A stretch of 64,000 bases of DNA from Podarcis muralis (GCF_964188315.1 NC_135670.1:6572001-6636000), one strand, 5' to 3'. Positions 3,801-60,569 are shown, numbered from the stretch's first letter. Notes: generated by a model not told the origin, from the letters alone. Numbers and translations: made by a program.

Positions 3801-4277
3801 ATGGCAAACTGTGGACCATCCTGTGCTGTCCCATCTTGCGCTTCCACCCCAGTCGTCGGTTTTGGATCAGCAGGTCTTGGAGGCCTTGGAGGCCTTGGTG
3901 GCCTTGGCCTTGGCGACACCTACGGCTATGGCTCCGGCGCCCTGGTGGGATCCGGCATCCCTTCTGCTAGTCTTGGTATTCTTTCTGGTGTCGCCCCTTC
4001 ATGCATCAACCAGATCCCACCATCAGAGGTCGTGATCCAGCCACCAGCCTGCATCGTGACCATCCCAGGACCCATCCTCTCTGCTAGCTGTGAGCCAGTG
4101 GCCGTAGGAGGAAATGCTCCATGCTCCCCTGGTGGTTTGGGCAGTGGGTTCCTCGGAGCTGGTTCTCTTGGAGCCGGTGCTCTTGGAGCTGGTGGTCTTG
4201 GAGGATCTCGTTTTGGACTTGGGAGTCGCTATGGATTCGTTGGAGACAGAGGAAGCATCTGTTACCGCCCCTGCTAA
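3801..4277 (+). CDS. Corneous beta-protein (beta-keratin) G1, 158 aa
   Basis: MANCGPSCAVPSCAS start, beta-core SCINQIPPSEVVIQPPACIVTIPGPILSASCEP, Gly-rich tail ending SICYRPC. Acceptor tttcAG at 3778-3779, 21 nt before the gccATGG start. Confidence 0.96.
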   Translation: MANCGPSCAVPSCASTPVVGFGSAGLGGLGGLGGLGLGDTYGYGSGALVGSGIPSASLGILSGVAPSCINQIPPSEVVIQPPACIVTIPGPILSASCEPVAVGGNAPCSPGGLGSGFLGAGSLGAGALGAGGLGGSRFGLGSRYGFVGDRGSICYRPC

Positions 4278-4799
4278 GTAAATATGGAAGGTTTATTAGG
4301 GAAAAGAATGTGGACTGCAAAACGTTCAAGCCTGGGTTTAAGATATGCTGAGCATCCTCAATTCCTGATGAAGCCACTGGGCATTGGGGGCACCCAGCAG
4401 GCCTGAAAATCAGACCCACAACTATCTTTCATGCATCTATTTCTCATCTTAACATAATCCCCCTCTATCCCACTGTTTATGTGCTTTCCTCTCCCCTGGC
4501 TTTTATTTATTATCTGTACAGCTCTTCTGCACTCCTCCAGCAGACTAAAGAGCAAAACAACAACAACTACGGACTTTTCCCCTGGAATTAATGCCCAGTC
4601 AGTTTGGTACATCTGTGAAAATGGCAGAGGTGGGAAAAGTTTTATAAATCCCACAAATAGAACTTATCTCATTCTGGCTCAAGATTTGCAATACAGAGAC
4701 AATTTATGTATATTTCTTCAGATTTGTCCTTTTCAAAAAATAACCAACTTCTTGAGAATTTGTTCAATTATGTATCTCTCCCCCCACCCCTGGATTCCT

Positions 4800-4805
4800 A
4801 ATAAA
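4800..4805 (+). terminator. G1 polyadenylation signal
   Basis: AATAAA followed by the shared motif ctgcatcatagc. Confidence 0.75.
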
Positions 4806-6229
4806 ACTTACCCTGCATCATAGCTCTGGTCTCCTGTTCTACTTTAGCATTTAGACTCTTTTCTTCCTTAAAGATGGATTACTGTGAAGAGAATCATCTG
4901 ATGATAGAATTCCAATCAAGGCCTTCCATCTCTGGAGCATTCTTTGCAGGATTGGGGCACATTTTCAGGGAGTTCCTAGAATCCTTACATGACACGGCGT
5001 AGGTGGGGTACATTACAGAGGGGGTCTCCAACATTTCTCAGACCAATGGCACCCTCGAGGACTTTCCTGGCTCCAATGTAGCTTCTGAGTGTCCCATTCA
5101 CTGGCTCCTAGATGGTCAGGGCAGTTCTATTTGCTTTCCGGAAAAGTGCCCAGGGCTTGAGTTGGAAGACTTGACACACTCTTTCCTTTGGAATTTAATC
5201 ATTAAAGTTGGTTGAGCTTTGGTTCAGAGTAGACTTAATCACGGGAAGTTGGATCGACGCAGTCCCCTCCACTACCTGTTCAGTCTCAATCACACTTCAC
5301 AAGCATCACTTTAAAAGAATATAAAAACGCACACATAGAGATTCCATTGATAAAGAAAGCAAAAGTGATTTACAGTGGCTCAGTGTAGGGGGAAGTATGG
5401 TGTGGGAGAAGCCACAGGCTGTGTATGTTACTGCCTGTGCCATGTGCCAGCCCTTCCTCCAACCTGGGGAACTGTGGTGGTCCTATCAGCCACCCTCGGG
5501 TCTGCAGCTGCTGCTGCTATTTACTAGGTCAGCTCACGGTAAGACCACCCTTATCTATGGCTGGATTGTGGATGAGGAAACCAATCTGGGCTGTTTCACT
5601 AAGACCTGGATGTCAGGAAACTGACATCGGAGCAGAGTGGAGAGGCTAGGCTCCCCAATGATGCCGGAGAGGGAACCAGTACAGGGGTAGAGAGGGCTTC
5701 CGCTGGGGAAGAAAGCCAAGGTGACACCAGGAAGAAAGAAGGGATGGAGAGCACGTCGGAGGGGAGGCTCCGAGACTCTTCAAGTGAGGTCATTGAGGAG
5801 AGTGGAGGACCACCGGTGGGGACGCCCACTCTGCGCAGAAGGCTTCCGCGCAGAGAGGCGAGAAGGAGGCTGTCCGTGAAGGAATTTTTATGTTGGAAGA
5901 AGTTTAGGAAACGCCCACTGACGGATTCTGCCAGCGACTGAAGCAGTCGTGCCCGAGGGGGGGTGCTCAGCCAGGGAAAACGCAACAGCCTCACGCAGTT
6001 TGGAGCAGGTGGAGGTTACACACAAGCAACCCCAATTCCCATGATACTGGGTGAACTGGGTGCATCTGGTCTCACCCTGTTGTGCCCACGCGGGTATTCG
6101 GCGTAGTATCATGGTAGACTTGGCACTCAAGGAGGGGGAGTTGCTGCTGTAGTCTATAGAGATTCTCTTCTTCCCTTCCTCTCTCCCTCCCAGCTCTCTG
6201 TTCATTTTGGGTAAGATCCAGAGCATGTG

Positions 6230-7740
6230 TCCTTAGCATTGGGCAATCAAGACAGATTATGGCTTCTGCTGCTTTACTGCCCACCTCACCGACTAGCAGT
6301 CTCCCTGCCTGAGCTGATGGAGCTGGTTTCGGAGGCAGTGTTGAGGAGACCTAGACTGCTGGTTCTGGGGGACTTCAACAACCATGCCCAGCTTGGCATG
6401 GCTGCCATGACAACCATGGTTCTCCTCCAACATGTAACTGGCCCAACACATCTGGACCCTGTTTTCTCAAGTGGGCAGGAAGAGAAAAGAGAGAGAGAGA
6501 AGGGTAGATTCGTAATCTGGGGAACAGGGTTTGCGTCTCCGCTCCTCCACATGCAGCTGCTGGGTGACCTTGGGCCAGTCACACTTCTCTGAAGTCTCTC
6601 AGCCCCACTCACCTCACAGAGCGTTTGTTGTGGGAGAGGAAGGGAAAGGAGAATGCTAGCCACTTTGAGACTCCTTAGGGTAGTGATAAAGCGGGATATC
6701 AAATCCAAACTCCTCGTCCTCTTCTTCTTCTTCTTCTCAGCAGCTTTCGAGACCATTGACCATGGCAACCTTCTGGAACGACTCTCCAAACTTGGGGTGG
6801 GTGACACTGCTTTGTGCTGGTTCCAGGCCTACTTGGATGGTTGTTCCCAGAGGGTGTTGCTTGGGGAGTGCTTCTCAGCCTCATGGAACCTTCAATGTGG
6901 GGTTCTGCAGGGCTCAATCCTATCCCCCACATTGTTTAACATCTACATGAAACTGCTGGGTGGGTTTATCCAGAGGTTTGGAGTATGTTGTCAGCAGTAT
7001 GCTGATGGCACTCAGCTCTATTTCTCCTTTACATCTGCAGGGGAGGCAATGGAAGTGCTGGACCAGTGTCTTCCTTCAGTAATAGACTGGATGAGACCCA
7101 ACAAACTGAAGTCAATCCAGATAAGACTGAGGCACTGTTAGTGGGTGGTTCCCTAGACCAGATGGCTGAGAGATCACCTGCTCTTGATGGAGTTATACTT
7201 CCTCTGAAGGAGCAGGTTCATTGCTTGGAGTTACTCCTGGATCCTTTGCTGTTGCTCGAGGCTCAGGTAGCCTCAGTGGTCCAGAGTGCCTTCCATCAGC
7301 TTCAGCTGGTGGCCCAGCTATGCCGCTATCTGGACAGGGATAGCCTTACTACTGTTGTCTATGCTCTGGTAACCTCAAGGTTAGATTACTGCAATGCATT
7401 ATACATAGGGCTGCCTCTGAAGACACTTTGGAAACTTCAGCTGGTGCAGAATTCAGTGGCCAGGTTGCTCACTGAAGCAAGACAGTTTGAGCATATTACA
7501 CTGATCCTGCACTGGCTACTAGTTAATTTCTAGGCCCAATTCAAAGTGCTGGTTTTGACCTATACAGCCTTAAATGGCTCAGGACCGCAATGCTCCAAGG
7601 ACCACCTCTTTCTATATGAACCTACGTGGTACCTGCGATCATCTTCTGAGGACCTCCTTTGTGTGCCTCCTCCTTGAGAGGTCCGGAGGGTGGCAACATG
7701 AGAACGGGGCCTTCTCTGCATGTCCTTTCGTCCCAGCTGT
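6230..7740 (+). mobile_element. Degenerate L2-clade LINE ORF2 (endonuclease and RT fragments)
   Basis: Frameshifted ORFs with LLVLGDFN, SAAFETIDH, GVLQGSILSPTLFNIYM, YADGTQLY and VTSRLDYCNALY motifs. Confidence 0.85.
6500..6738 (+). mobile_element. tRNA-derived SINE inserted in the L2
   Basis: Matches the copy at 30734-30982 and ends in a (CTT)n tail. Confidence 0.75.
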
Positions 7741-9083: not shown

Positions 9084-9426
9084 ACCTTTGCCCTGCCTCG
9101 TTTTGAACTCCAAGGCCAAACTTGCCAGTTGTTCCTTTTATCTCTTGACTCCCTACTTTAGCATTCCAATCCCCTATAATGAGAAGAACATCCTTCTTTG
9201 GTGTCATTTCTAGAAGGTGTTGCAAGTCTTCATAGAATGTTGGGAAAGATGGAGGGCACAAGGAGAAGGGGACGACAGAGGACAAGATGGTTGGACAGTG
9301 TTCTGGAAGCTACCAGCATGAGTTTGACCAAATTTCAGGAGGCAGTGGAAGACAGGAGTGCTTGGAGTGCTCTGGTCCATGTGGTCACGAAGAGTCGGAC
9401 ACGACTAAATGACTAAACAACAACAA
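9084..9426. mobile_element. RTE-BovB LINE insertion: inverted endonuclease fragment plus 3' end
   Basis: Minus-strand FYEDLQHLLEMTPKKDVLLIIGDWNAKVGSQE; plus-strand MLGKMEGTRRRGRQRTRW...TKSRTRLND with a (caa)n tail; 10-bp TSD atatctgtaa at 9074-9083 and 9427-9436. Confidence 0.85.
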
Positions 9427-10242: not shown

Positions 10243-10248
10243 TTTATT
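10243..10248 (-). terminator. G2 polyadenylation signal
   Basis: tttatt on the plus strand, with gctatgatgcag immediately upstream on the plus strand. Confidence 0.75.
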
Positions 10249-10751: not shown

Positions 10752-11228
10752 TTAGCAGGGGTTGTAACAGATGCTTCCTCTGTCTCCAACGAATCCATAG
10801 TGACTCCCAAGTCCAAAACGAGATCCTCTAAGACCACCAGCTCCAAGAGCACCAGCTCCAAGAGAACCGGCTCCTAGGAACCCACTGCCCAAACCACCAG
10901 GGGAGCATGGAGCATTTCCTCCCACAGCCACGGGCTCACAGCTGGCAGAGAGGATGGGTCCTGGGATGGTCACGATGCAGGCTGGTGGTTGGATCACGAC
11001 CTCTGCTGGTGGGATCTGGTTGATGCATGAAGGGGCGACACCAGAAAGAATACCAAGACTAGCAGAAGGGATGCCGGATCCAACCAGGGCACCGGAGCCA
11101 TAGCCGTAGGTGTCGCCAAGGCCAAGGCCACCAAGGCCTCCAAGGCCTCCAAGACCTGCTGATCCAAAACCGACGACTGGGGTGGAAGCGCAAGATGGGA
11201 CAGCACAGGATGGTCCACAGTTTGCCAT
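10752..11228 (-). CDS. Corneous beta-protein G2, 158 aa
   Basis: 4 aa differences from G1 and 3 from G3. Acceptor AG at 11250-11251 (minus), 21 nt before the ATG. Confidence 0.96.
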   Translation of the reverse strand: MANCGPSCAVPSCASTPVVGFGSAGLGGLGGLGGLGLGDTYGYGSGALVGSGIPSASLGILSGVAPSCINQIPPAEVVIQPPACIVTIPGPILSASCEPVAVGGNAPCSPGGLGSGFLGAGSLGAGALGAGGLRGSRFGLGSHYGFVGDRGSICYNPC

Positions 11229-17427: not shown

Positions 17428-17904
17428 ATGGCAAACTGTGGACCATCCTGTGCTGTCCCATCTTGCGCTTCCACCCCAGTCGTCGGTTTTGGATCAGCAG
17501 GTCTTGGAGGCCTTGGAGGCCTTGGTGGCCTTGGCCTTGGCGACACCTACGGCTATGGCTCCGGCGCCCTGGTTGGATCCGGCATCCCTTCTGCTAGTCT
17601 TGGTATTCTTTCTGGTGTCGCCCCTTCATGCATCAACCAGATCCCACCATCAGAGGTCGTGATCCAACCACCAGCCTGCATCGTGACCATCCCAGGACCC
17701 ATCCTCTCTGCCAGCTGTGAGCCCGTGGCTGTGGGAGGAAACGCTCCATGCTCCCCTGGTGGTTTGGGCAGTGGGTTCCTAGGAGCCGGTTCTCTTGGAG
17801 CCGGTGCTCTTGGAGCTGGTGGTCTTAGAGGATCTCGGTTTGGACTTGGGAGTCGCTATGGATTCGTTGGAGACAGAGGAAGCATCTGTTACACCCCCTG
17901 CTAA
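17428..17904 (+). CDS. Corneous beta-protein G3, 158 aa
   Basis: 2 aa differences from G1. Acceptor AG at 17405-17406. Confidence 0.96.
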   Translation: MANCGPSCAVPSCASTPVVGFGSAGLGGLGGLGGLGLGDTYGYGSGALVGSGIPSASLGILSGVAPSCINQIPPSEVVIQPPACIVTIPGPILSASCEPVAVGGNAPCSPGGLGSGFLGAGSLGAGALGAGGLRGSRFGLGSRYGFVGDRGSICYTPC

Positions 17905-23906: not shown

Positions 23907-24401
23907 TTAGCAGGGGGTATAGCAGATGCTGCCTCTACGCCCCACAAACCCATAACGGCCACGGCCCCCCAAACCACCAGAGCTAGACCCCAGAAGACCT
24001 GCACCACCATAGAGCCCTCTGCCAAATCCGCTGCCAAATCCGGATCCATAACCTCCAGCAGCACATGGGGTGTTGCCTCCGACAGACACAGGCTCACAAC
24101 TGGCAGAGAGGATGGGTCCTGGGATGGTCAGGACGACAGAAGGTGGCTGGACCACAACCTCTGCTGGTGGGATCTGGTTGACGCATGAAGGCTGGACTCC
24201 AGAAAGAATACCAAGACTGGCAGAAGGGACGCCGGATCCAACCAGGGCACCGGAGCCATAGCCAGAACCATAGCCGAATCCACCGCCCAATCCACCGCCA
24301 AGGCCAAGGCCACCGCCAAAACCACAGCCGGCTGGTCCAAAACCAACGACTGGGGTGGAAGCACAAGATGGGACGGCGCAGGAAGGTCCACAGTTAGCCA
24401 T
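23907..24401 (-). CDS. Corneous beta-protein G4, 164 aa
   Basis: MANCGPSC...SCVNQIPPAEVVVQPPSVVLTIPGPILSASCEP...RRGSICYTPC. Acceptor AG at 24410-24411 (minus). Confidence 0.96.
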   Translation of the reverse strand: MANCGPSCAVPSCASTPVVGFGPAGCGFGGGLGLGGGLGGGFGYGSGYGSGALVGSGVPSASLGILSGVQPSCVNQIPPAEVVVQPPSVVLTIPGPILSASCEPVSVGGNTPCAAGGYGSGFGSGFGRGLYGGAGLLGSSSGGLGGRGRYGFVGRRGSICYTPC

Positions 24402-30214: not shown

Positions 30215-30663
30215 TATAAAGATTTAATTCTCTTTCTGCTGGTAGTCGCACATTTAGTGATAGCGTATCACTGGAAATCCCAGGTGGAGCTACCTCTTGA
30301 GACATGGTTCAATAATATTTGGGATATAGCTAGTTCAGAATGACTGCTGGGCTTAGAAGAGTTGCAAATGGTGTTATAAAGGGAAATACCTTTGGTGAAA
30401 CCTGGTCTCCCCTTTTTTTATTTGTAAAGGAAAAAGTAAGTAAAGCTCTTCCATCAGCCTCACCAACCTGTCTGTGGAGAACCTATATGGACTGCCAACG
30501 TTTTAAGATCATGTAAAATAGCACCATAAACTTAATGCTATGTTCTTTTCTTTCCAGTGACTGTATTGTATAATAAATATATATATATTTTTTAAAAGAA
30601 CTAAGTCCCTCTGAATTCAATGGGATTTTCTCTCTGGTATGTTCCTGATCATTCTCAAAGTTT

Positions 30664-30664
30664 C

Positions 30665-30706
<42 letters not shown>
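30664..30706. repeat. (TGT)n microsatellite
   Basis: Direct reading. Confidence 0.95.
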
Positions 30707-30708
<2 letters not shown>

Positions 30709-30733
30709 CTTTTCCCCCCTGACAGGGACTCAA

Positions 30734-30982
30734 GAGCCAGTGCGGTGTATTGGTTAAGAGTGGTGGACTCGTAATCTGGTGAACTGGGTTCGATTCCCTG
30801 CTCCTCCACATGCAGCTGCTGGGTGACCTTGGGCCAGTCACACTTCTCTGAGGTCTCTCAGCCCCACTCACTTCACAGATTGTTTGTTGTGGAGGAGGAA
30901 GTGAAAGGAGATTGTGAGCCGCTTTGAGACTCCTTTAGGTAGTGATAAAGCAGAATATCAAATCCAAATCCAAACTCTCTTC
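30734..30982 (+). mobile_element. tRNA-derived SINE
   Basis: A box tgcggtgtattgg and B box ggttcgattccc; body matches 6500-6738. Confidence 0.8.
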
Positions 30983-35222: not shown

Positions 35223-35729
35223 ATGGCTAACTGTGGACCTTCCTGCGCCGTCCCATCTTGTGCTTCCACCCCAGTCGTTGGTTTTGGACCAGCCGGCTGT
35301 GGTTTTGGCGGTGGCCTTGGCCTTGGCGGTGGATTGGGCGGTGGATTCGGCTATGGTTCTGGCTATGGCTCCGGTGCCCTGGTTGGATCCGGCGTCCCTT
35401 CTGCCAGTCTTGGTATTCTTTCTGGAGTCCAGCCTTCATGCGTCAACCAGATCCCACCAGCAGAGGTCGTCATCCAGCCTCCGGCCGCCATCGTGACCGT
35501 CCCAGGACCCATCCTCTCTGCCAGCTGTGAGCCCGTGGCTGTGGGAGGATATGCTCCATGCTCCCCTGGTGGTTATGGATCCGGATTTGGCAGCGGATTT
35601 GGCGGCGGATTTGGCAGAGGGCTCTATGGTGGTGCAGGTCTTCTGGGGTCTAGCTCTGGTGGTTTGGGGGGCCGTGGCCGTTATGGGTTTGTGGGGCGTA
35701 GAGGCAGCATCTGCTATACCCCCTGCTAA
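35223..35729 (+). CDS. Corneous beta-protein G5, 168 aa
   Basis: N-terminus identical to G4; core IQPPAAIVTVPG...PVAVGGYAPCSP; tail ending RRGSICYTPC. Acceptor AG at 35213-35214. Confidence 0.96.
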   Translation: MANCGPSCAVPSCASTPVVGFGPAGCGFGGGLGLGGGLGGGFGYGSGYGSGALVGSGVPSASLGILSGVQPSCVNQIPPAEVVIQPPAAIVTVPGPILSASCEPVAVGGYAPCSPGGYGSGFGSGFGGGFGRGLYGGAGLLGSSSGGLGGRGRYGFVGRRGSICYTPC

Positions 35730-36234
35730 GCTCTCACGGTCTGTCAAGAAGGAGGAAAGAAAAAGAGATCTGTGGTGGACTATTTCGGTCTGATTATAGA
35801 TATGCTGAGCACCCAAACTCCCTAGGCAGTCCCAATGGCAGCTGGGAGAGTGTTCTGCATCCCTTGTAATCAGGCCCATCTAGAACATGCAGCTGTTTCC
35901 AGTTTAATTTTATCTCACTTTCTCCTGCTTGCTACTATGATATTTATTTGCCTACGTCTCTTTGAAACACACCAGTTCGCATTGGGAAGAAAAGCACAAG
36001 ATCCATTCACTATGTCTATGAAATTAGCATGCAAGTGTAAATATGTGTAATTGGGACTTAATGTAAAGGAAGGTGGAAAGAATGTTCTATAAATGTAGAA
36101 CCCTCTACTCTACCTCCAACCTGAAAAAAATAATTCTAAAGGAGAAGCTGTTCACTGGAATGTGTTCTTTTTTGCTTTATTGTCTTCCAGTATGCTTAGT
36201 AGTCACTTGAATACTTTTACTGTTTGAAATTCCC

Positions 36235-36240
36235 AATAAA
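36235..36240 (+). terminator. G5 polyadenylation signal
   Basis: AATAAA followed by acttttctgcatcatagcactgg. Confidence 0.75.
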
Positions 36241-37650
36241 ACTTTTCTGCATCATAGCACTGGCTTTCTGGTTTTTCTTTTATGTGGCAGCACAATCCTA
36301 TATCCGTCTACCAAGAAATAAGTTCCTTTCAATACAGTCCAATGCAACTTACTCAAAAGTTAGTCGTTTCAGGGTGACAACCTTAAGAACATAACACATA
36401 TCCTCTTGGACTGGTTCAAGCACCCACCATCCTGTTAACAGTGCAGCAAGTATTACCAGAACTTGCCCCCAAATATCATCAGAACCCTTGGATTTTGGAG
36501 GAGGTGTAGGAGATATCACGGGGTTACTTACCAACAGAGAATATTGATAAGGCATAGAACCAAGAAATCCAGAGAGAAGCATCACTGTTATTTTGCTCAG
36601 CAATAGGGGGGAATTTCAAATCTGGGTTTGAGGAACAGTTAATGAACATTCCATTCATTTCTTAGATTCTGTAGAAGAAATTGATTTCCTGACACCAAAT
36701 ATCTATAAAAATTGACCACTGGTTTTTTTTAGTCTCAAAGGATTTAACCAATTGTTCTAGTACCTCTGGTGTCTTAGATGCTAGGAAGGCTGCCAAAGGC
36801 CTGAGAGAAGAGGAATGTTCTTGCCTGGCACTTAAAGATATGTAATGAAGGCATCTATTGAACCTCCTTGGGAGAGCAGTCCAAAAACAGAGAACCACAA
36901 AAGAAAATGAACATTTTCTTGTTGCTGTCCTTCAGACCTCTCATGGAGGAGGTACCTGAAGAAGGGTCTCAGATGGTGATCACAGGGACTGGGTCAGTTC
37001 ATATGGGCAGAGGTGGTCCTTGAGACAAACTTGGTTCTCCAGCTCTTTGGGACTACAATTCCCATCATCCCTGACCACTGGTCCTATTAGCTAGTAGTAG
37101 TAATAATAGTAATTATAATTATAATTATAATTATAATTATAATTATAATTTATTTATACCCCGCCCATCTGGCTGGGTTTCCCCAGCCACTCTGGGCTAC
37201 TTCCAACAGAATATTAAAATACAATAGTCTGTTTAACATTATTTGTAGTCCCAAAACAGCTGGAGGGCCAAGTCTGGCCATCACTGGGTTAGGCTATTGC
37301 TGTTCAGATAGGAGCACAGCTGGCTCACCAGCCAAATCTGATGGAAGGGACTCCATGCCACCGAGGCCAACTGAACCTCAAGTGACAGCAGTGGAACCAG
37401 AAGGACACCCCAAGCTACATGTCTGTTCCTTCAGGGGCTATGTAACCCCATCAAGAGCAGGCCACCTCCCATCTATCCAGTCTATGGAGCACCCACTAAC
37501 TGTACCTCAGTCTTATCTGGACTGAGCTTCAGTTTGTTGGCTCTCATCCAGTCCATTACCAAGGAAGAAAACTGCCCAGCACATCCACGGACAAGCCTTG
37601 AGATATAAAAGAGAAGTAGAGCTGTGTGCCATCAGCATATTGCTGATGAC

Positions 37651-38035
37651 CAGGGCTGTCTTAAGCATATTCGGCGCTGTGATGCAAAGCTCCCTCTGTG
37701 CCCCGCCCCCGTTCCCCGGAGTTGTCAACCTTTTTTCAGGGAGGATGGCACTGCAGGAGGTGGGCAGTGGCTGGAGGGCGGCTCCTCCAGTGGGGAAGAG
37801 CCGGAGGCTGGACTTGGCGCCTTCTGGCTCAGCTGGCCACTTCATGCCACGGTGGGCATGGCAGGCAGAGGCTCTGGATGCAGCGCTGCTTCAGCACAGC
37901 ATGGCGGAGGCGGGAGAGGGCGGAGAGCTGATGCTGGGAGGCACCACATCCAGACTCTGCCTCTTCCCTGGCAACCTCCAGAACATGGCGCCCTGGCACC
38001 CCTCACCACTAGCCTCTATGGGTAAGATGCCACTG
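37651..38035. mobile_element. GC-rich hAT-like MITE (arm partner 43502-43870)
   Basis: TIR cagggctgtctta/taagatgccactg. Confidence 0.6.
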
Positions 38036-39847
38036 CTGTCGATATACGCCAAAACTCCAGATAACCCCACTCAGCAGTTTCATTTGGATGTTAAACAGCA
38101 TGAGGGATAAAATCAAATTCTTCATGGGTCTCATAGAGCCAAAGAGCACTCCCCAAGCATCACCTACTGGAGGTCCAAGTTGGACCGGAACCACTGCAGT
38201 ACAGTGCCACGCACACTTAACTTAGGCTGGATCTAGACACATCAAAGAAGCGTTTCCGTGAAACCTGTTGCAAACTTTGCATGAGAAATTGGGTTGGCAA
38301 AAATAGGACTCCCCAGCGCCATCTGGTGTCACAGTGTTAGAGTGCATAAACAACGCTTATAAAGCGCTTTTTCTTTGCCAGTGTAGCTGAGTCCCTTAGA
38401 CAAGCATTTTTCAGAACAGCAGCTTTCATGACACATGAAGGAAGATAATGACACGATAAAATTCAAAACAGTAACTATTAATGACACAGCTGTATGGAAA
38501 ATGCATCTGGAAGACAAAATGTATTGAGGAGCTAGTGATGTGACACGGAGCCCTTCCTGCCTCTGTTCCTTTCCCCCTCCCTCGCTCTTGTTAAGTATTT
38601 TGATGGTGTGAGAACAGTCTTTAATGTCCTGAGAAAGTTAGAAGGAGGTGAAGCCCTGCCCCCCAGCTGCCTTAATAAGTTGTGGAGGATAACAGCTGGG
38701 CCCCTTCTTTGATGTTGGACATTGTTTTGAGGAAGTTAGGCAATGGGAGGTGGTGGCTATCTATAAAATTGGGTGGTTGGGGCAGAGTTTTTTTTGAAGC
38801 TCGTGCATGGACTGATTGGCTGCAGAGCCGTGCAAACTGAGGCTACCTGGAGGAGTCACTTCACTGCTTCTTGAGGGCTTCCAAGTGGCAGATTGAAGTG
38901 CTTGCTTGCTGTTTTAGGATAAAATCTTTTAATCTTCTCACTCACTTTTGTAGTTTGCATTGCTTCTGAGTCGCATTTTAAAAGAACCACTTTCCCTTTG
39001 GCAAGACAACAGCCTTTCAAAATCCTATTAAAACTATTTAGTTTAATTAATTCAACAACATTTATGAACTTGATCCAGGGATACCAGCTTTTTACAACCT
39101 GGTAATTACATCTCCAATGCCCCTCTGCTACCCGCTTGCCTTTTAGCACCTCCCTGGATTACCCCACTGCCTCCCTTGGGGTGATTCCACTCACTTTGGG
39201 AGTTATTGCTTTAGCATTGCAAGTTAGTAATTCTAACACTTGGAACAAAGAGATGGGATGTTTGTGCTTGGCTTGCTAGGGATGCAACTTTAGAATATAT
39301 GAAAGTGTACTGTAGCCTGTGTGAGAACTGGTCAAGCCTGGAACCACCTACCCAACCTCCATCTTACTTGCCTGAGGCTGCAGTCCTAACCCTGCTTACC
39401 TGGCAGTAAGCCCCATTGAATTCAATAGGACTCAGATTGATTTGGTTAGGGCTTTGCTGTAATTGAGATCAAGGCTGACCCTGATCTTAGACAAAGGATG
39501 TGAAAGCTGAGGTCCTCCAGCTATTGAATAGCTACATATAGTACCCACCAGTCCCAGCAAGTATGACTGTTGGTCTGGGGCTGATGAGAGCTGTGGTCCA
39601 ATGACATCTCGTTGGCTGCAGGTGCCTTAGACAAAAACAGTTACACCCAAAGGAGGCTGTTACAGAGGTATATCTGTACCATTATCCTTCAGGTCAATTT
39701 GGTTTATGGGCCAAAGAGGTGAGGCCTTTTCTATGATTCTCCCAAATGATGGAATACAATTTCCATTGAAATGAGAATTGTCTCAGCAGTGCATATTTTT
39801 TAAAATAAAGCAGGTTTTAATTGGTATTGTTTTGAGTTACCTTTTCA

Positions 39848-40285
39848 TAGAATCATAGAATTGTAGAGTTGGAAGAGACCCCTATGGTCATCTAGTCCAA
39901 CCCCCTAAAGCATCCATGACAGATGGCCAACCAACGTCTGCTTCAAAACCTCCAAGGAAGGAGAGTCCACAACCTCCTGTGTGAGACTGTTTCACAGTCA
40001 AACAGCTCCTACTGTCAGAAAGTACTTCCTGATGTTTAGTTGGAATCTCCTTTATTTTAACTTGAAGCCATTGGTTGAAGTCCTACCCACAAGAGCAAGA
40101 GAAAAACAAGTTTGTTCCCTCTTCCATGTGAAAACCCTTGAGATATTTGAAGAGGGCTGTCATATCTCATTCTCCTCTTTTCCAAGCTAAACATGCCCAG
40201 CTCCGTCAACCATTCTTCATAAAGCTTGCTTTTCAGACTCTTGATCATCTTGGTTGCCCACCTCTGCACACATTCCAGCTTTTTC
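39848..40285 (-). mobile_element. CR1 LINE 3' end
   Basis: atagaatcatagaattgtagagttgg 3' end; KLECVQRWATKMIKSL...GMFSLEKRR motif. Confidence 0.8.
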
Positions 40286-40524
40286 TTGAGGAAAGGGCTG
40301 TAGCTCAGTTGTAGAACATCTGCTTTGTATGCCAAAGCTCCCAGGATCAATCCCTATCATCCCTAGGGAGTGCTAGGAAAAGGACTCCTATCTCAAACCC
40401 TGGGAGATGCTACAGCCAATGTAGACTATACTGAGTTAGGTATACCAGTGGCCTGATTTTGTACAAGGCAGTTTCTTAATTATCTAACTGGGGTTATTTA
40501 AGGCTGGGTTTATTTAAATGGTTA

Positions 40525-42402: not shown

Positions 42403-42710
42403 TGCAATGGAAATATGAAAAGCTTCAAGCAAGCAATTGTAAAAGAAGCAGGACAGGAACAAGGCAAAGGCACACAGTATACAATGTGGCTTTGAACTTC
42501 TTCTTGGTCTGGAGGCTTTCGGGACACATAGTGGGAAAGCAGGAGAAAGAAAAGATGGCAGAGACTGCTGTTGGCTTAGATGACGGTCCCAGAAATTCAG
42601 ATTTTCCAGAATCCAAGGTGAGATGCTTAATAATGGATAGGCATGATCTTCACCCATTCAGGGTCATTCAAATCATCACCACACAGATTTTCTTCAGAAG
42701 TTCAATAGGC

Positions 42711-42830
42711 CTAAAAGCACACGCTGCCACGACGCCCCTGCAGAGCCCTCCTTCCAAAGAGCCCACCCCTCCTCAGACCATAGCCCCAAGAGCTTCCAAG
42801 GAGGCCATCCCCATAGCCCCACCCACCATG
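42711..42830 (-). pseudogene. Orphan CBP C-terminal fragment (G7/G8-type tail)
   Basis: Translates HGGWGYGDGLLGSSWGYGLRRGGLFGRRALQGRRGSVCF*, aligning to the G7 tail. The post-stop gcctattgaactt resembles G7/G8 gccaattaaacct. In-frame stop upstream; no start or core. Confidence 0.85.
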
Positions 42831-42961
42831 GTCAGGTTACATTTACCTTTACGTAATTAATAGTTACTGTTTTGAATTTTATCATGTCATTATCTTCCTT
42901 CATGTGTCATGAAAACTGCTGTTGATTCATATGCTGTTGTGGGGGATAGATCATTGTCTTA

Positions 42962-43193
42962 TTATGTATGGCCACCTCATGAGAAGAGAAGACTCCCTGG
43001 AAAAGACCCTAATGTTGGGAAAGATTGAGGGCACACGGAGAAGGGGACGACAGAGGACGAGATGGTGGGACAGTGTTCTCGAAGCTACCAACATGAGTCT
43101 GACCAAGCTGCGGGAGGCAGTGGGAGGCAGGAGTGCCTGGCGTGCTCTGGTCCATGAGGTCACGAAGAGTCGGACACGACTAAACAACAACAA
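42962..43193 (+). mobile_element. RTE-BovB 3' fragment
   Basis: GHLMRREDSLEKTLMLGKIEGTRRRGRQRTRW...TKSRTRLN with a (aac)n tail; absent from the G5 arm. Confidence 0.85.
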
Positions 43194-43904
43194 TGCATTC
43201 TAACACTGTGACACCAGATGGCGCTGTGGAGTCCTGTTTTTGCCAACCCAATTTCTCATGCAAAGTTTGCAACGGGTTTCACGGAAACGCTTCTTTGATG
43301 TGTCTAGATCCAGCCTAAGTTAAGTGTGAGTGGCACTGTTCTGCAGTGGTTCCTGTCCTACTTAGACTTACAGTAGCTGATGCTTGGGGAGTGCTCTTTG
43401 GCTCTGTGAGGTCCATGAAGGGTTTGATTTTATCCCTCATGCTGTTTAATATCCACATGAAACTGCTGAGTGGGGTTATCTGAAGTTTTGGACATCGTCA
43501 GCAGGGGCGTCTTACCCTTAGAGGCTAGTAGTGCAGGACGCCAGGGTGCCAAGTTCTGGAGGGCACCAGGGAAGAGGCGGTGGCTGGACACAGTGCCTCC
43601 CCACATCAGTTCGCCGCCCTCGCCCAAAACAGTGCCGTGCTCGGAGCCTCCGCCTGGCGTGGCCACCTTGGCACGAAGCAGCCAGCTGAGCGGGGAGGCA
43701 CTGCGTCCAGCCTCCGCCTCTTCCCTGCCGGAGGAGCAGCCCTCCAGCCACTGCCCACCTCCTCCAGCCCCGCCAGCAGCGCTGTCCTCCCCCCCAAAAA
43801 GGTCGACAATGGGGGTGGGTGCCAGGGGGAGCCTTGCACCACGGCACCGAATATGCTTAAGACAGCTCTACTTCTCTTTTATATCTCAAGGCTTGTCCGT
43901 GGAT

Positions 43905-44680
43905 GTGCTGGGCAGTTTTCTTCCTTGGTAATGGACTGGATGAGAGCCAACAAACTGAAGCTCAGTCCAGATAAGACTGAGGTACAGTTAGTGGGTGCTC
44001 CATAGACTGGATAGATAGGAGGTGGCCTGCTCTTGATGGGGTTACATAGCCCCTGAAGGAACAGACATGTAGCTTGGGGTGTCCTTCTGGTTCCACTGCT
44101 GTCACTTGAGGTTCAGTTGGCCATGGTGGCATGGAGTCCCTTCCATCAGATTTGGCTGGTGAGCCTGCTGTGCTCCTATCTGAACAGCGATAGCCTAACC
44201 CAGTGATGGCCAAACTTGGCCCTCCAGCTGTTTTGGGACTACAACTCCTATGATCCCTAGCTAACAGGACCAGTGGTGAGGGATGATGGGAATGGTAGTC
44301 CCAAACCTTGAGGGCCAAGTTTGGCCATCATTGGCCTAACCTCTGTTGCCTCTACCACTAGGTTAGATCACTGCAATGCATTGTATGTGAAGCTGCCTCT
44401 GAAAACAGTTCAGAAACATTGGCTGGTGCAGAATTTGGTGGCTGGGTTGCTCACTGGGGCAGGACAGTTTGAGCATATAACACCAATCCTGGCCTGACTC
44501 CACTGGCTGCTAATTAGTTTCCTGACCCAATAAAGCCTTAAATGGCTCAGGACTGCAATATCTCAAGGACCAGCGCTGCCCATATGAACTGACCCAGTCC
44601 ATGTGATCACCATCTGAGACCCTTCTTCAGGTCCCTCCTCCATGAGAGGTCTGAAGGACAGCAACAAGAAAATGGTCATT
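43905..44680 (+). mobile_element. L2 LINE 3' fragment with a nested hAT MITE (44201-44333)
   Basis: MDWMRANKLKLSPDKTEV motif; the MITE has 8-bp TSD gcctaacc. Confidence 0.75.
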
Positions 44681-45358
44681 TTCTTTTCTGGTTCTCTGTT
44701 TTTGGACTGCTCTCCCCAAGGAGGTTCAATAGATGCTTTCATTACATATCTTTAAGTGCCAGGCAAGAACATTCCTCTTCTCTCAGGCCTTTGGCAGCCT
44801 TCCTAGCATCTAAGACACCAGAGGTACTAGAACAATTGGTTAAATCCTTTGAGACTAAAAAAAACCAGTGGTCAATTTTTATAGATATTTGGTGTCAGGA
44901 AATCAATTCGATATACAGAATCTAAGAAATGAATGGAATGTTCATTAACTGTTCCTCAAATCCAGATTTGAATTTTCCCGCTATTGCTGAGCAGACCATC
45001 TTAAAACAACAGTGATGCTTCTCTCTGGATTTCTTGGTTCTATGCCTTATCAATATTCTCTGTTGGTAAGTAACCCCGTGATATCTCCTACACCTCCTCC
45101 AAAATCCAAGGGTTCTGATGATATCTAGGTGGCAAGTTCTGGAAATACTTGCTGCACTGTTAACAGGATGGTGGGTGCTTGAACCAGTCCAAGAGGATAT
45201 GTGTTATGTTCTTAAGGTTGTCACCCTGAAACGACTTACTTTTGAGTAAGTTCCATTGAACTGTATTGAAAGGAACTTATTTCTTGATACACATGTATGG
45301 CATTGTGCTGCCACATAAAAGGAAAACCAGAAAGCCAGTGCTATGATGCAGAAAAAGT

Positions 45359-45364
45359 TTTATT
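45359..45364 (-). terminator. G6 polyadenylation signal
   Basis: Same context as in G4 and G5. Confidence 0.75.
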
Positions 45365-45869
45365 GGGAATTTCAAACAGTAAAAGTATTCAAGTGAATAC
45401 TAAGCATACTGGAAGACAATAAAGCAAAAAAGAACACATTCCAGTGAACAGCTTCTCCTTTAGAATTATTTTTTTCAGGTTGGAGGTAGAGTAGAGGGTC
45501 CTACATTTATAGAACATTCTTTCCACCTTCCTTTACATTAAGTCCCAATTACACATATTTACACTTGCATGCTAATTTCATAGACATAGTGAATGGATCT
45601 TGTGCTTTTCTTCCCAATGCGAACTGGTGTGTTTCAAAGAGACGTAGGCAAATAAATATCATAGTAACAAGCAGGGGAAAGTAAGATAAAATTAAACTGG
45701 AAACAGCTACATGTTCTAGATGGGCCTGATTACAAGGGATGCAGAACACTCTCCCAGCTGCCATTGGGACTGCCTAGGGAGTTTGGGTGCTCAGCATACC
45801 TAAAATCAGACCAAAATAGTCCACCACAGATCTCTTTTTCTTTCCTCCTTCTTGACAGACCGTGAGAGC

Positions 45870-46337
45870 TTAGCAGGGGGTATAGCAGATGCTGCCTCTA
45901 CGCCCCACATACCCATAACGGCCACGGCCCCCCCAAGCACCAGAGCTAGACCCCAGAAGACCTGCACCACCATAGAGCCCTCTGCCAAATCCGCTGCCAA
46001 ATCCAGATCCATAACCACCAGCAGCACATGGGGTGTTGCCTCCGACAGACACAGGCTCACAACTGGCAGAGAGGATGGGTCCTGGGATGGTCAGGACGAT
46101 AGGAGGTGGCTGGACCACAACCTCTGCTGGTGGGATCTGGTTGACGCATGATGGGGCAACTCCTGCCAGGACTCCAAGGTTGCTTGCTCTTTCAGCACCT
46201 CCATAACCATAGCCGAGACCTCCGTAGCCGTAGCCGAGACCTCCATATCCATTGCCAAGACCTCCTGCTGATCCAAACCCAACAGTGGGAGTGGAAGCAC
46301 AGGATGGGACAGCGCAGGATGGACCACAGTCAGCCAT
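45870..46337 (-). CDS. Corneous beta-protein G6, 155 aa, chimeric
   Basis: N-terminus MADCG...GGAERASNLGVL is like G7/G8; tail GGYGSGF...RRGSICYTPC is like G4/G5. Acceptor AG at 46356-46357 (minus). Confidence 0.95.
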   Translation of the reverse strand: MADCGPSCAVPSCASTPTVGFGSAGGLGNGYGGLGYGYGGLGYGYGGAERASNLGVLAGVAPSCVNQIPPAEVVVQPPPIVLTIPGPILSASCEPVSVGGNTPCAAGGYGSGFGSGFGRGLYGGAGLLGSSSGAWGGRGRYGYVGRRGSICYTPC

Positions 46338-47184
46338 TGTTGTGTAGAGGTGAGTCTGAAACCAAGAAGACCATGGGACAAAATGAACATGTGGAATGCT
46401 ACTTCAATAGGGAACAGAGGGGACATTTAAATCAGCTGCCTTTGACAGTTCTAACGCTATGCCCTAATGCTTGGGTTCTTTATTGTCTTCTCTTTCTTTC
46501 ACCACAGCCCTTCTCTTCATTGTGGGTCCCAAATCCAAATACTGGTAGATCCAGGAATGTCTGAGAACGTCCTCTATCTGAAACTCTGGAGAATAGTTTC
46601 CAGTCAGTGAGGACAATACTGAACTAGGAGGTCCAATGGTCTGTCTTGGTAAAAAGCAACTCTCTAAGTTTCTATTTAAACCAGACCTTTAGCTGGAACA
46701 ACGAATGCAGGAATTTTTTTTCTTTCCTAGAGGAAGGGCCATTACTCACTGGCAGAACATATGCTTTGTATTCGATCCCTGGAATCTGCAGGTTGGGCTG
46801 GGAAAGAATCTCTCATCTGAAACCCTGGAGAGCCTCAGTCGGTCAGAAGAGACAATACTGAACTAGATGGATCAATTTTAAGGCAGCTTCCAATATTATT
46901 ACTTTCTTCATCTGCCAAATCTTCCATGAAGAACAAATGTATATTAGCCTATGCAATTAATACTCCCTTATGCTGTTTTTTTTTAATCTTCCTGATTGAA
47001 TTTTTGCTAAGGTTACATTGCTGGGGAAATCTGAAAAACATTCCGTGGAATGCTGTCTTGTGTCTCAAGCCCAATGCATGGAGAGTCATTAAGGCTAAAT
47101 TTGTACTTTACAATGAGGAAAGCTGGATTTGCAAAACTTGTGATAGAATAAGACTCTCTCACCAGGAAAACAAAAATGTCTAGT

Positions 47185-47359
47185 NNNNNNNNNNNNNNNN
47201 NNNNNNNNNNNNNNNNNNNNNNNNNNNNNNNNNNNNNNNNNNNNNNNNNNNNNNNNNNNNNNNNNNNNNNNNNNNNNNNNNNNNNNNNNNNNNNNNNNNN
47301 NNNNNNNNNNNNNNNNNNNNNNNNNNNNNNNNNNNNNNNNNNNNNNNNNNNNNNNNNNN
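47185..47359. other. Assembly gap (175 N) inside the inferred G6 intron
   Basis: Run of N. Confidence 1.
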
Positions 47360-53933: not shown

Positions 53934-54443
53934 ATGGCTCACTGTGGCCCATCCTGTGCCGTCCCATCCTGTGCTTCCACCCCCACCGTTGGGTTTGGAT
54001 CTGCAGCTCTTGGTAGACGTGGAGGTCTTGGCTACGGATGGGGAGGTCTTGGCTACGGCAATGGAGGTCTCGGCTACGGCTATGGAGGTCTCGGCTACGG
54101 CTATGGAGGTGCCGAAAGAGCAGCCAATCTCGGTGTCCTGGACGGAGTCATCCCTTCATGCGTCAACCAGATCCCACCAGCAGAGGTCGTGATCCAGCCA
54201 CCTCCCAGTGTCCTGACCATCCCAGGGCCCATCCTCTCTGCCAGCTGTGAGCCTCTGTCTGTTGGAGGCAACACTCCATGTGCTGTTAGTGGTTCTGGAA
54301 TCGTAGGGGGTTATGGCTATGGTGGGTGGGGCTATGGGTCTGGCCTCCTTGGAAGCTCTGGGGGCTGGGGCTATGGTTTGGGCTATGGAAGGGGAGCACT
54401 CCTTGGAAGGAAGTTCGGGCGTCGTGGTAGCATCTGTTCTTAG
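53934..54443 (+). CDS. Corneous beta-protein G7, 169 aa
   Basis: MAHCGPSC, GGLGYGx repeats, core SCVNQIPPAEVVIQPPPSVLTIPGPILSASCEP, tail ending GRRGSICS. Acceptor (t)n-AG at 53918-53919. Confidence 0.96.
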   Translation: MAHCGPSCAVPSCASTPTVGFGSAALGRRGGLGYGWGGLGYGNGGLGYGYGGLGYGYGGAERAANLGVLDGVIPSCVNQIPPAEVVIQPPPSVLTIPGPILSASCEPLSVGGNTPCAVSGSGIVGGYGYGGWGYGSGLLGSSGGWGYGLGYGRGALLGRKFGRRGSICS

Positions 54444-54667: not shown

Positions 54668-54673
54668 AATAAA
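54668..54673 (+). terminator. G7 polyadenylation signal
   Basis: AATAAA followed by gcttgttctgcat. Confidence 0.7.
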
Positions 54674-56614: not shown

Positions 56615-56911
56615 TATAAATAGGTGTCACCAGTCCATCCATTAATATAATAACTGTGAAAAAGGAAGTATATAATAATAAATACTTAGCTAAGAAAAAG
56701 AAAAGGGGAAAAGAAAGGAGGGAGGTAAAAAAGCATACCTTTAAATAAACTTTCTTATTTTAAAAATAAATTCATATTTATAGATACTCAAAAAACAAAG
56801 TAATAGCCATCTATATTAATATGAAAAAAATATCTGTGGAAATCAATGTGGAGGGGCAGAAAATATAAATTGCATACTTTTTTCACAGATTAATCACAGA
56901 CATATTACCAG

Positions 56912-56912
<1 letters not shown>

Positions 56913-56945
<33 letters not shown>
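56913..56945. repeat. (TG)n microsatellite
   Basis: Direct reading. Confidence 0.95.
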
Positions 56946-56948
<3 letters not shown>

Positions 56949-57630
56949 GTAATTCCAAATTCATAAATTAAGCTCCCACCCTATTTAAACACTATATACA
57001 GTAAACCAGGCAAAAAGTATTAGATCACAGAGAATAAATTATATGGAGGAGTGTTTTCTTCAACTTTCTTATCCCCCCCAAAATATTTAAAATGTCCATC
57101 TTTTAACTATTCCCCCCCCCTCCTTGCTGGATAACAAGAACTCTTCTCTGACAAGTTGCTGCAGTCAAAATGGCAGCTTGGAACTTCCTCATTTTTCCAA
57201 TTTTGATGCCTTGGCAGAGCCTTGACATGACATGACTTCTGGTGCTTCGTAAGGACCTGGAAGTCATGTCAGAGGCCTTGCGGTGCAGGTGCTGAGCACC
57301 CACAACAATGTTTTGTGGGTGCCCTGGCCCCCTGGATGCTTTCCTTTGTTCTCTCAGTCTCTCCCTTCCCTGCCTCTTACTCCGAGTCCTTCACCAACAA
57401 TCCATCACTTTAATGTGTGTGTAATTCTTGGGTCCCAATAATGGCCCATAGCTGAGGACACCAAGGAAAACAAAAGGGGGCTGGGAGCCAGGGAAGAATA
57501 TAAAAAGAAGAAAAGAGGAAAGAAAGAAGAAAGAGAAAGGCACTTCCAATTTTCCATCTGCCAGTTACATAACAGAAATTATTCAAAATATTCACTCCAA
57601 GAAAGCGTGTTCTCCTTCATGGAGAGCATG

Positions 57631-58923: not shown

Positions 58924-58949
58924 TGCAAAACATCCAGCTGTTCTACTTC

Positions 58950-59300
58950 CTGCTAAGCAATATTTTCCCAATCCCCAGATTCTATAGTTTCAATATAGGG
59001 TTTCGCGCTAAGTATACAATTCCTGGTAAAAGGTTTCTGCAATTTCTCGCATCTTTATCCTTATATTTAATGGATGGAATACACATTTGGATCTGTTTAT
59101 CTTTCAGATGTTTTGATAGTGATTTAGATGGTTTATTGCTGTATTTCAACCATCTTTGATTTTTTTTACAGTTGGCAAAGCATTCCAGTTTTTCGGCTTG
59201 GATATTTTGAATGTTCTCTGTTGTTCTTAACTTCATACACCATGTTTGCTTATGCTAATGTGTCTTTTCTTAACATTTAAACCATTTTTTTCTGCTTGAG
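58950..59300 (-). mobile_element. L1-clade ORF2 internal fragment
   Basis: KYSNKPSKSLSKHLKDKQ...IPSIK resembles the EN-RT linker. Confidence 0.45.
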
Positions 59301-59835
59301 AGAATCTCTTATACATCTCTGCTGCTGTTTTCGTTTTGTCAGAACACCTCTGATATTAGATTCAGTTTCATCCCATTTATGGCCATTTTGTTTATGCACT
59401 TAAAAAAACCAATCTAAATATTGCTCTATTTGTGTCTTTCTGTCTGCTCTTACTGATATACTGTTATTCATTCTCTAGAGTTTATTATTACAATTATTTG
59501 ACATTTTGATGTTCAATTTTATTAGTGCACGATCTGCATAAATCTTTAGTAATACTGGAATAGATTTCACTCAAGTGACCAAATTAGCAGCTATTTTAAA
59601 ATATCACATTCAACAGGATCTATGAGCTTGCAAGTAAAATGTATAATCCCTTAAAGTTGGAGTATAAAACCTCCAAACATCTGTCAAATTTTTGTTGGCA
59701 AACATGCCTTGAGCCACATTCTAGTTTTAATTTAGACAAAAAGTCACTTCAATCAGCTGGACAGCTTGCTGTGAGGAACTGAGGCCAAGTGTTACAAAAA
59801 CCAACACACATGGGTTACCATAATGCGCCAAAAGC

Positions 59836-59841
59836 TTTATT
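59836..59841 (-). terminator. G8 polyadenylation signal
   Basis: Sense ttcAATAAAgctttt, same context as in G7. Confidence 0.7.
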
Positions 59842-60065
59842 GAAAAGATTCAAGAAATGACATTGATAGCTGTATGAGAAATACAGAGGAAATTTAGCAT
59901 ATAAGCATCTTAGTTTTCTGGACTTCAAAGCCAAGAGGTGGGGGATGAAGGGGGTTCAACTTCAGCAGTGGATCCTGGGATTTAGCTCTTTTGAACCACG
60001 CCCAATGGATCTGTATCAAGCTCTCTGATTATCAGTTCATAATATGCTTCTCAGGTTTAATTGGC

Positions 60066-60569
60066 TTATGCACAGATGTTACCACGACGCCCGAACTTCC
60101 TTCCAAGGAGTGCTCCCCTCCCGTAACCCAAACCATAGCCGAAGCCCCCAGAGCTTCCAAGGAGACCAGACCCATAGCCCAAGCCCCCAAAGCCTCCTAC
60201 GATCCCGGAACCACCAACAGCACATGGAGTGTTGCCTCCAACAGCCACAGGCTCACAGCTGGCAGAGAGGATGGGCCCTGGGATGGTCACAACGCAGGCA
60301 GGTGGCTGGACCACAACTTCTGCTGGTGGGATTTGGTTGATGCAGGATGGGACAACTCCTGCCAGGACTCCGAGGTTGGCTGCTCTTTCAGCACCTCCAT
60401 ATCCATAGCCGAGACCACCAAATCCGTAGCCGAATCCTCCATTTCCATAGCCAAGACCTCCCAATCCATAGCCGAGACCACCATAGCCAAGACCTCCTGC
60501 TGATCCAAACCCAACAGTGGGGGTGGAAGCACAGGATGGGACAGCACAGGATGGACCACAGTCAACCAT
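60066..60569 (-). CDS. Corneous beta-protein G8, 167 aa
   Basis: MVDCGPSC...GGAERAANLGVLAGVVPSCINQIPPAEVVVQPPACVVTIPGP...GRRGNICA. Acceptor AG at 60588-60589 (minus). Confidence 0.96.
   Translation of the reverse strand: MVDCGPSCAVPSCASTPTVGFGSAGGLGYGGLGYGLGGLGYGNGGFGYGFGGLGYGYGGAERAANLGVLAGVVPSCINQIPPAEVVVQPPACVVTIPGPILSASCEPVAVGGNTPCAVGGSGIVGGFGGLGYGSGLLGSSGGFGYGLGYGRGALLGRKFGRRGNICA

Follow-up and report, generated by a model that had tools for sequence, protein, structure and literature searches.

Mosaic corneous beta-protein genes in a Podarcis muralis array probably arose by ectopic homologous repair at a shared core

Reptile scales, claws and gecko setae are built of corneous beta-proteins (CBPs), whose 34-residue β-sheet core and variable flanks are established (PMC11816140). 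The variable ends are thought to set material properties; the origin of new combinations of ends has not previously been shown. Gene conversion in genes of the lizard epidermal differentiation complex (EDC) has only been suggested (PMC11431283, wall lizard; PMC7393497). GENECONV analyses yielded a few fragments of 33–72 nt in chicken, where conversion was judged 'very rare' (PMC2894828), and none in a turtle cluster (PMC3673632). The literature searched contained nothing relevant on chimeric CBP or beta-keratin genes; most subscription journals lie outside it, and a prior description is possible. Here, a CBP array is analyzed in a 64,000-nucleotide stretch of Podarcis muralis DNA (GCF_964188315.1 NC_135670.1:6572001-6636000; hereafter the window). 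Two of its genes, G5 and G6, are derived mosaics. The reading favored here, to which a probability of about 0.8 is assigned, is that both were generated by ectopic homologous repair between inverted neighbors, with the core as the sole near-identical patch between subfamilies.

The array comprises eight intact CBP open reading frames (ORFs; G1–G8) of 155–169 codons within 57 kb, each uninterrupted and putatively contained in a single coding exon (Table 1). The strand order is strictly alternating through all eight genes (+, -, +, -, +, -, +, -), and every neighboring gene pair is thus an inverted repeat, either head-to-head or tail-to-tail. Such an arrangement favors conversion and inversion over copy-number change. 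The first-pass annotation of this DNA grouped the genes by three N-terminal heads (a, G1–G3; b, G4 and G5; c, G6–G8), three types of second core half (x, y and z) and three tails (p, q and r). This module table was confirmed at both the protein and DNA levels, with three corrections: to the x core of G5, to the supposedly hybrid z core of G8 and to the type of an orphan tail downstream of G6. G4 and G5 exhibit no differences in 180 nt of the head and one in 147 nt of the tail, but the second core half differs at 13 of 60 positions. Over those 60 positions, only one difference separates G5 from G2. G4 and G6 are identical in the second core half (0/60) and nearly so in the tail (5/147) and differ at 30 of 87 positions in the variable head, which in G6 is closest to those of G7 and G8.

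G5 is a b-type gene that contains a tract of ~105 bp copied from an a-type gene. In an exact 3SEQ-type triplet test, G5 displays a run of 17 G2-type sites among 19 informative sites (alignment nt 261–363) inside 97 G4-type sites (p=2e-16). The signal persists when the b-type gene of Lacerta agilis, LgB, replaces G4 as the b parent (p=3e-7). Outside the ~105 bp of core, G4 aligns colinearly with G5 between -648 and ~+1282 at ~98–100% identity. The left end of the tract is located in the core, and the right end lies at most 8 nt from the core–tail boundary, where a and b genes cease to align. The window coordinates of the tract, derived from the alignment, are accurate to within a few nucleotides. 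Silent sites were transferred as well: G5 carries the codon of G2 at 7 of the 10 synonymous codon differences and at 8 of the 11 that are non-synonymous. The tract matches a non-orthologous paralogue and is bordered on both sides by sequence of its own lineage, as expected of interlocus gene conversion. The x tract is the derived state in G5 because LgB retains the y state. The x core of G5 departs from that of G1–G3 by three residues, which is the first of the corrections to the module table, and the same b-head/x-core junction is found in the P. muralis protein P0005. At the start of the G5 tail (35600–35640), a 12-nt in-frame insertion adds one GFGG-type unit relative to G4 and G6; this insertion is repeat slippage in the glycine-rich q tail.

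G6 is a former c-y-r2 gene; an inverted 3.3-kb copy of the 3′ half and flank of G5, its convergent neighbor, interrupts the exon in the middle of the core. Triplet tests with G8 or LgC2 of L. agilis as parent P and G4 as parent Q place the switch between nt 234 and 241 (p=5e-26 and 5e-22; switch points are given in the coordinates of a 15-sequence alignment, in which the core occupies nt 208–366). In an 8-sequence triplet test, G6 is G8/G7-like in its head up to ~nt 228–234 and G4-like thereafter (p<1e-20). The similarity to G5 does not stop at the coding sequence (CDS). G5-like DNA runs from the middle of the core through the tail and the 3′ untranslated region (3′UTR) to G5 +3263, and blastn blocks at G5 positions 35223–37025, 37243–38347 and 38415–38485 correspond colinearly to 46337–44561, 44244–43193 and 42923–42853 on the G6 side. 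The unique pieces are 96–99% identical, and 20 of 719 positions differ between the 3′ flanks of G6 and G5. Sharing of transposable elements only was considered for the homology beyond +1800 and was ruled out because the unique pieces between the repeats are colinear at 96–99%. The left junction is homologous and in frame, whereas the right junction is non-homologous, and ~140 nt of the recipient gene were lost. A clean swap inside an exon does not describe G6, in which the old tail was left behind.

The orphan tail is the original 3′ end of the G6 gene, stranded 3 kb downstream. Approximately 20 nt of unmatched filler separate the end of the G5-like DNA from the orphan, which begins at the equivalent of G7 CDS nt 380, aligns to nt 380–535 and continues through a stop codon into 3′UTR-like sequence. 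The orphan had been placed in the r type with the tails of G7 and G8. It instead represents a separate subtype, r2, that is orthologous to the tail of LgC2, with 76% identity over tail and UTR and indels in common; the G7 and G8 tails form r1. At the protein level, the orphan also resembles the tail of an intact Zootoca gene, P0009, whose head in turn resembles the G6 head.

Several further features were observed in the G6 arm. Segments 42902–43303 and 44108–44375 reach word depths of 1e5–1e6 in the public DNA runs X1 and X9 and of 1e4–1e5 in run X15, and are high-copy interspersed repeats resembling short interspersed elements. Part of the repeat DNA in the arm matches window positions 9236–9409, and pieces from 43450–44500 match 6941–7681 at 72–83% identity. 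A few nucleotides from the homologous junction, run X1 contains single-base differences at 46100 (T>C) and 46103 (G>A), the former also in part of the X15 depth. These differences may be allelic or may have been left by ongoing conversion between the two arms.

The head of G6 is transcribed, as its specific segment (46118–46385) is <95% similar to any paralogue and is covered in X15, a putative RNA run. Apart from repeats and a low depth (~300–500) over the orphan, X15 covers only 45314–46385, at a word depth of ~1e5 that includes the head-specific segment; the adjacent bin, 46386–46500, has no coverage. A loose poly(T) end at 45342 corresponds to a poly(A) signature. Such coverage is what an abundant minus-strand mRNA carrying a 3′UTR of ~530 nt would give. 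The raw RNA reads of run X23 yielded repeat-derived coverage only and are uninformative on CBP expression.

To define ancestral states, the window was compared with four loci read from the L. agilis array (GCA_009819535.1, CM020432.1, 33.77–33.84 Mb). These parts contain two a-x-p genes (LgA1 and LgA2), one b-y-q gene (LgB) and three c genes with r tails (LgC1–LgC3). In the parts read, orientation in the Lacerta array mostly alternates; the exceptions are a chimera (LgCh) with the c gene that follows it, LgC3, and the interval spanning a 12.6-kb unread stretch. From this comparison, the axp, byq, cyr and czr combinations are old subfamilies common to the window and L. agilis. The z core of G8 had been regarded as a hybrid. 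However, exact triplet tests are non-significant (p 0.27–0.43), and the second core half of G8 (ACVVTIPG ... VAVGGNTPCAVGG) is residue-for-residue identical in LgC3, which together rule out a recent x/y hybrid. In the a gene LgA1, the second core half also begins with ACVVTIPG, as in G8 and LgC3, and z is most likely the old core state. The derived combinations are bxq (G5) and cyq (G6) alone, and two events suffice for the window. Combinatorial shuffling of three heads, three cores and three tails is accordingly not borne out: four of the six combinations are ancestral, being shared with Lacerta, and G8 is not a supported recombinant.

LgCh (33793467–33793949, minus strand) combines a c head with LgB-like sequence that extends from the core to LgB +1257. 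Its head matches G7 up to nt 292, with a switch at nt 292–306 (p=7e-28). The LgB-like DNA spans 1.23 kb and is followed immediately, with 0–1 nt of microhomology, by an r1 orphan that begins at c-gene nt 360 and shares 90% identity with the tail and UTR of G7. LgC2, the Lacerta orthologue of the gene disrupted in the window, is intact. The 3′ flanks of each chimera group with the b gene of the same species (bootstrap 100), and divergence is 2.8–2.9% within species versus ~8% between species. One ancient chimera common to the window species and Lacerta was ruled out because the c heads and orphans belong to different orthologues, the inserts measure 3.3 kb versus 1.23 kb and the array orientation differs. 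Two independent events are the simplest reading, given that recipients, insert lengths and array orientation all differ. A query of a protein database with G6 for further chimeras returned only intact c-type genes, a weak blank because the Lacerta chimera itself is missing from the match list, and the P0044 locus contains a single additional partial CBP.

Exchange within subfamilies took a different form. In their 5′ flanks, G2 is orthologous to LgA2 (91% identity over 578 nt) and G3 to LgA1 (86% over 493 nt), which places the G2/G3 duplication before the split of the two genera. The CDSs of G2 and G3 are nevertheless 99% identical to each other versus 90–93% to their Lacerta orthologues (G2–LgA2, 90%). 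The G1 CDS is 97% identical to those of G2 and G3, and identity falls to ~55–70% directly outside -49 and +478. This distribution of identity indicates that the a-type coding exons have been homogenized by concerted evolution. In Lacerta, LgC1 has the head of LgC2 and the tail of LgC3, with a switch at nt 294–378 (p=4e-5). Exchanges within a subfamily have their limits outside the core, where the exon or CDS terminates or deep in 3′ flanking DNA.

These observations suggest the following mechanism. Three old subfamilies, a (G1–G3), b (G4 and G5) and c (G6–G8), are arranged with neighbors as inverted repeats. Ectopic repair within a subfamily would homogenize whole coding exons, whereas repair between subfamilies could begin or terminate only in DNA that is still near-identical, namely the β-sheet core, and would leave mosaics. 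In G5, a short conversion of ~105 bp would have introduced the second half of an a-type core. In G6, a break in or just after the core would have been repaired by invasion of the core of the convergent neighbor G5. Approximately 3.3 kb (core half, tail, 3′UTR and flank) would then have been copied and rejoined to the other broken end without homology, giving an in-frame, transcribed c-head/q-tail gene with its old tail stranded downstream. The probable order is the G5-to-G6 copy, followed by the G4/G5 duplication and finally the G5 tract. The junction sequences suggest a repair pathway that was either homology-initiated and end-joining-terminated or based on replicative template switching.

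Five homologous switch points between modules were located: the left junction of G6 (nt 234–241), the left junction of LgCh (292–306), the left (241–267) and right (369–374) ends of the G5 tract and LgC1 (294–378). All five lie in the core or a few nucleotides from its 3′ edge, compared with ~0.3^5 under a uniform null. The clustering of breakpoints in the core predicted by the first-pass annotation was thus found for every homologous between-subfamily switch. Between 70 and 100% of the between-subfamily tracts of perfect identity of at least 12–16 nt are located in the core, and homology dependence predicts the same clustering. Relative to an identity-weighted expectation of 0.7–1.0 per event, five of five switch points, a small sample, represent no enrichment. 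The switch points cluster in the core because nearly all usable between-subfamily identity lies there, and both insertions resume just after the core because only a core-adjacent break leaves an end that is able to invade a gene of another subfamily. We infer that the core is a passive homology patch and not a dedicated shuffling system.

The strongest competitor, although unlikely, is a true hub, as proposed in the first-pass annotation, in which the core–tail boundary is break-prone or a recombination hotspot, new head/tail combinations are selected for and modules are shuffled repeatedly. In its favor, an intact c-head/q-tail chimera arose independently in two lineages, the recipient gene resumes within ~25 nt of the core end in both chimeras, and the G5 tract ends on the right at the same position as the LgC1/LgC2 head–tail boundary. 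The window chimera is also intact and apparently highly transcribed. However, homology alone places 70–100% of the usable target in the core. Because a gene of another subfamily can be invaded only from a core-adjacent break, the shared position is an ascertainment effect. Only two derived events are present among eight genes, and four of the six supposed combinations are old lineages. No motif or structure, and no candidate cis signal or enzyme that would direct the exchange, is evident in the window, although no motif search was made. A broader version appears similarly doubtful: β-core head/tail replacement would be a recurrent, selection-favored route to new matrix-forming tails in lacertid, and perhaps all squamate, CBPs, and the two chimeras would be parallel adaptive events helped by a break-prone core–tail boundary in inverted arrays.

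An assembly artifact, in which near-identical inverted paralogues were misjoined, is very improbable. In its favor, the arms are 97–99% identical over kilobases, a gap lies 0.85 kb from G6, and none of the listed contigs from public runs bridges either G6 junction. Nevertheless, the b-head/x-core junction of G5 occurs in P0005, an independently derived P. muralis record, and the L. agilis assembly contains an analogous chimera and orphan. Fourteen public runs contain at least half of the sampled words of 42500–46500; they belong to a set of 20 matching runs from nine studies and include a second species label, and X9 covers all 30 depth bins. The junctions, moreover, preserve the reading frame and a coherent orphan.

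Formal tests of recombination were also applied to the alignment as a whole. A permutation test of the pairwise homoplasy index (PHI) type gave p<=5e-4. An exhaustive GARD-like breakpoint scan (1652 IQ-TREE fits and dynamic programming) selected breakpoints at alignment nt 234 and 360, with a corrected Akaike information criterion (AICc) of 4107.7 versus 4438.2 for one tree (delta -330); a third breakpoint at nt 270 brought little gain. In approximately unbiased (AU) tests, the tree of each segment was rejected on the other segments (p<1e-3), and the 'subfamily' tree was rejected on the core segment (p<1e-3). On the tail segment, a topology-only test did not reject the tree ((a),(b),(G6,G7,G8)), but this test has low power because branches can collapse there, and the triplet and flank evidence was used in its place. 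The PHI, triplet, GARD-like and AU analyses all reject a single tree, the outcome that would have undone the first-pass proposal. The mosaics are the result of DNA exchange and not of protein-level convergence. Within the G5 tract, G4 and G5 show 10 synonymous codon differences, and at 7 of these G5 has the exact codon of G2, which shows that DNA was copied. The remaining explanation, that no recombination occurred and that a single gene tree with uneven rates and convergent or parallel substitutions under core selection accounts for the data, draws on the few residues that separate the x, y and z cores, on z being ancestral rather than hybrid and on a residual a/b/c signal that could be rate heterogeneity, but it is the least probable of all and is already refuted for G5 and G6, since convergence cannot yield copied synonymous codons, 3 kb of non-coding flanks at 97–99% identity, an orphan tail or the failure of every common topology in AU tests on the core segment.

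Five points weigh against the proposed ectopic repair between inverted neighbors or limit its detail. After removal of G5 and G6, a weaker residual signal persists, in which the heads of b genes are a-like and their core halves c-like (p ~1e-4); it may reflect older exchange or a lineage-specific burst of substitution in the a lineage. The Lacerta inventory is incomplete, as the 12.6 kb between the chimera and the b gene (CM020432.1 33798711–33811284) lies outside the parts read. The near-equal donor–copy divergences (2.8% and 2.9%) could mean that continuing conversion between the arms resets the clock, which makes ages and order uncertain. The filler and the 0–1 nt of microhomology fit end joining and template switching alike, and the sequence does not distinguish the pathway. 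Finally, the assignment of X15 as RNA is a guess, and the 3′ part of G6 could attract reads that derive from the near-identical 3′ halves of G4 and G5. Separately, the unread Lacerta stretch may contain a further b gene or the real donor.

The window holds part of a CBP array in a lacertid EDC. The six proteins scanned (G1 and G4–G8) match PF02422 'Keratin' over the core at 29.8–38.8 bits (curated cutoff 25), and G2 and G3 are 97–99% identical to G1. The top database matches of the window CBPs are CBPs of L. agilis, Zootoca vivipara and P. muralis. The G7 protein differs by two residues from the P. muralis protein P0018, and the exact G6 protein is recorded in assembly GCA_964188315.1. In G1–G3, a polypyrimidine tract and an AG are located ~21 nt before the ATG; the presumed gene model, consisting of a non-coding exon, an intron and a coding exon, follows PMC11431283. 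The coordinates of the features are summarized in Table 1.

Table 1. Genes and other features of the CBP array in window coordinates
Feature	Position	Strand	Description	Basis or remark
G1	3801-4277	+	a-type CBP gene, axp	ORF and PF02422 match
G2	10752-11228	-	a-type CBP gene, axp	head-to-head with G3
G3	17428-17904	+	a-type CBP gene, axp	inverted-repeat arm with G2 from -77 to +1736
G4	23907-24401	-	b-type CBP gene, ancestral b-y-q	
G5	35223-35729	+	b-type gene, bxq; converted tract inside; donor of G6 insert	
G6	45870-46337	-	chimeric CBP gene, cyq: c-type head, in-frame junction inside the core, then b-type core half and q tail	
G7	53934-54443	+	c-type gene, c-y-r1	intact orthologue of the gene turned chimera in Lacerta agilis
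G8	60066-60569	-	c-type gene, c-z-r1	z core most likely ancestral
Orphan r2 tail with stop codon and 3′UTR start	~42834-42686	-		tblastn
Gene-conversion tract in G5	35498-35600	+	core second half	8-sequence codon-alignment nt 261-363
Donor arm (G5 mid-core, tail, 3′UTR, 3′ flank)	35454-38485	+		colinear blastn blocks
Inverted copy inserted within G6 locus	42853-46107	-	gives G6 second core half, q tail, stop codon, 3′UTR and poly(A) site	
Assembly gap (N run)	47185-47359		intergenic, between G6 and G7	

The assembly gap between G6 and G7 sits 848 nt upstream of the G6 start codon and outside every coding exon and homology block used, and thus no conclusion depends on continuity across it. A second N run is present at 63625–63753, outside the genes discussed here. 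Simple trinucleotide repeats, read as extended stretches of Asn, Thr, Leu and Ile codons, occur at 30483–30871 and 63346–63917, both likewise outside these genes and the latter beside the second N run. By eye, ORFs at 6227–7533 (plus strand), ~40057–40350 (minus strand) and 42922–43203 resemble reverse-transcriptase fragments of long interspersed elements.

The window and its Lacerta outgroup provide junction-level examples of a short conversion tract, of exon-wide concerted evolution and of a chimera with the discarded tail still in place, formed twice independently. CBP phylogenies and orthology tables based on whole coding sequences will mislead unless the three modules (head, core and tail) are treated separately. 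As in concerted evolution of other tandem families, coding sequence is homogenized within a species and the flanks retain orthology (G2/G3 versus LgA2/LgA1). Candidate pathways for junctions such as those of G6 and LgCh are homology-initiated, end-joining-terminated double-strand break repair and fork stalling and template switching/microhomology-mediated break-induced replication (FoSTeS/MMBIR). The chimeras resemble products of these pathways in having one precise homologous junction and another with 0–1 nt of microhomology or filler, and in the insertion of a copied segment of 1–3 kb at a break with loss of ~60–140 nt of the recipient; unlike those systems, the events here are read from scars only.

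Interlocus conversion and concerted evolution in keratin-associated protein genes (PMC4180150) likewise involve short tracts between nearby paralogues, with tract ends where homology ends. Relative to earlier suggestions for lizard CBPs (PMC11431283), donor, recipient, tract limits and outgroup are shown here. Short between-subfamily fragments (33 and 72 nt) in the genes of chicken microchromosome 25 were likewise taken as traces of recombination. Avian feather genes, in contrast, are mostly direct tandem repeats whose number grows by unequal crossing-over, whereas the strict alternation in the window leads to conversions and inverted insertions and not to copy-number change. Chimeric gene formation by non-allelic recombination or segmental duplication, as in a Drosophila case (PMC1463047), similarly involves an in-frame gene that joins 5′ sequence of one gene to 3′ sequence of another, with an early stage visible. 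G6 departs from the general class of chimeric genes in that its junction lies inside a single coding exon, in a conserved structural core, and its donor is an inverted neighbor 10 kb away; one junction is homologous and one non-homologous, an orphan tail survives, and the event recurs in a second genus. The processes themselves, interlocus conversion, inverted segmental duplication and chimeric gene formation, are ordinary for a tandem family; the case is unusually clean, and the parallel event in a second genus is unexpected.

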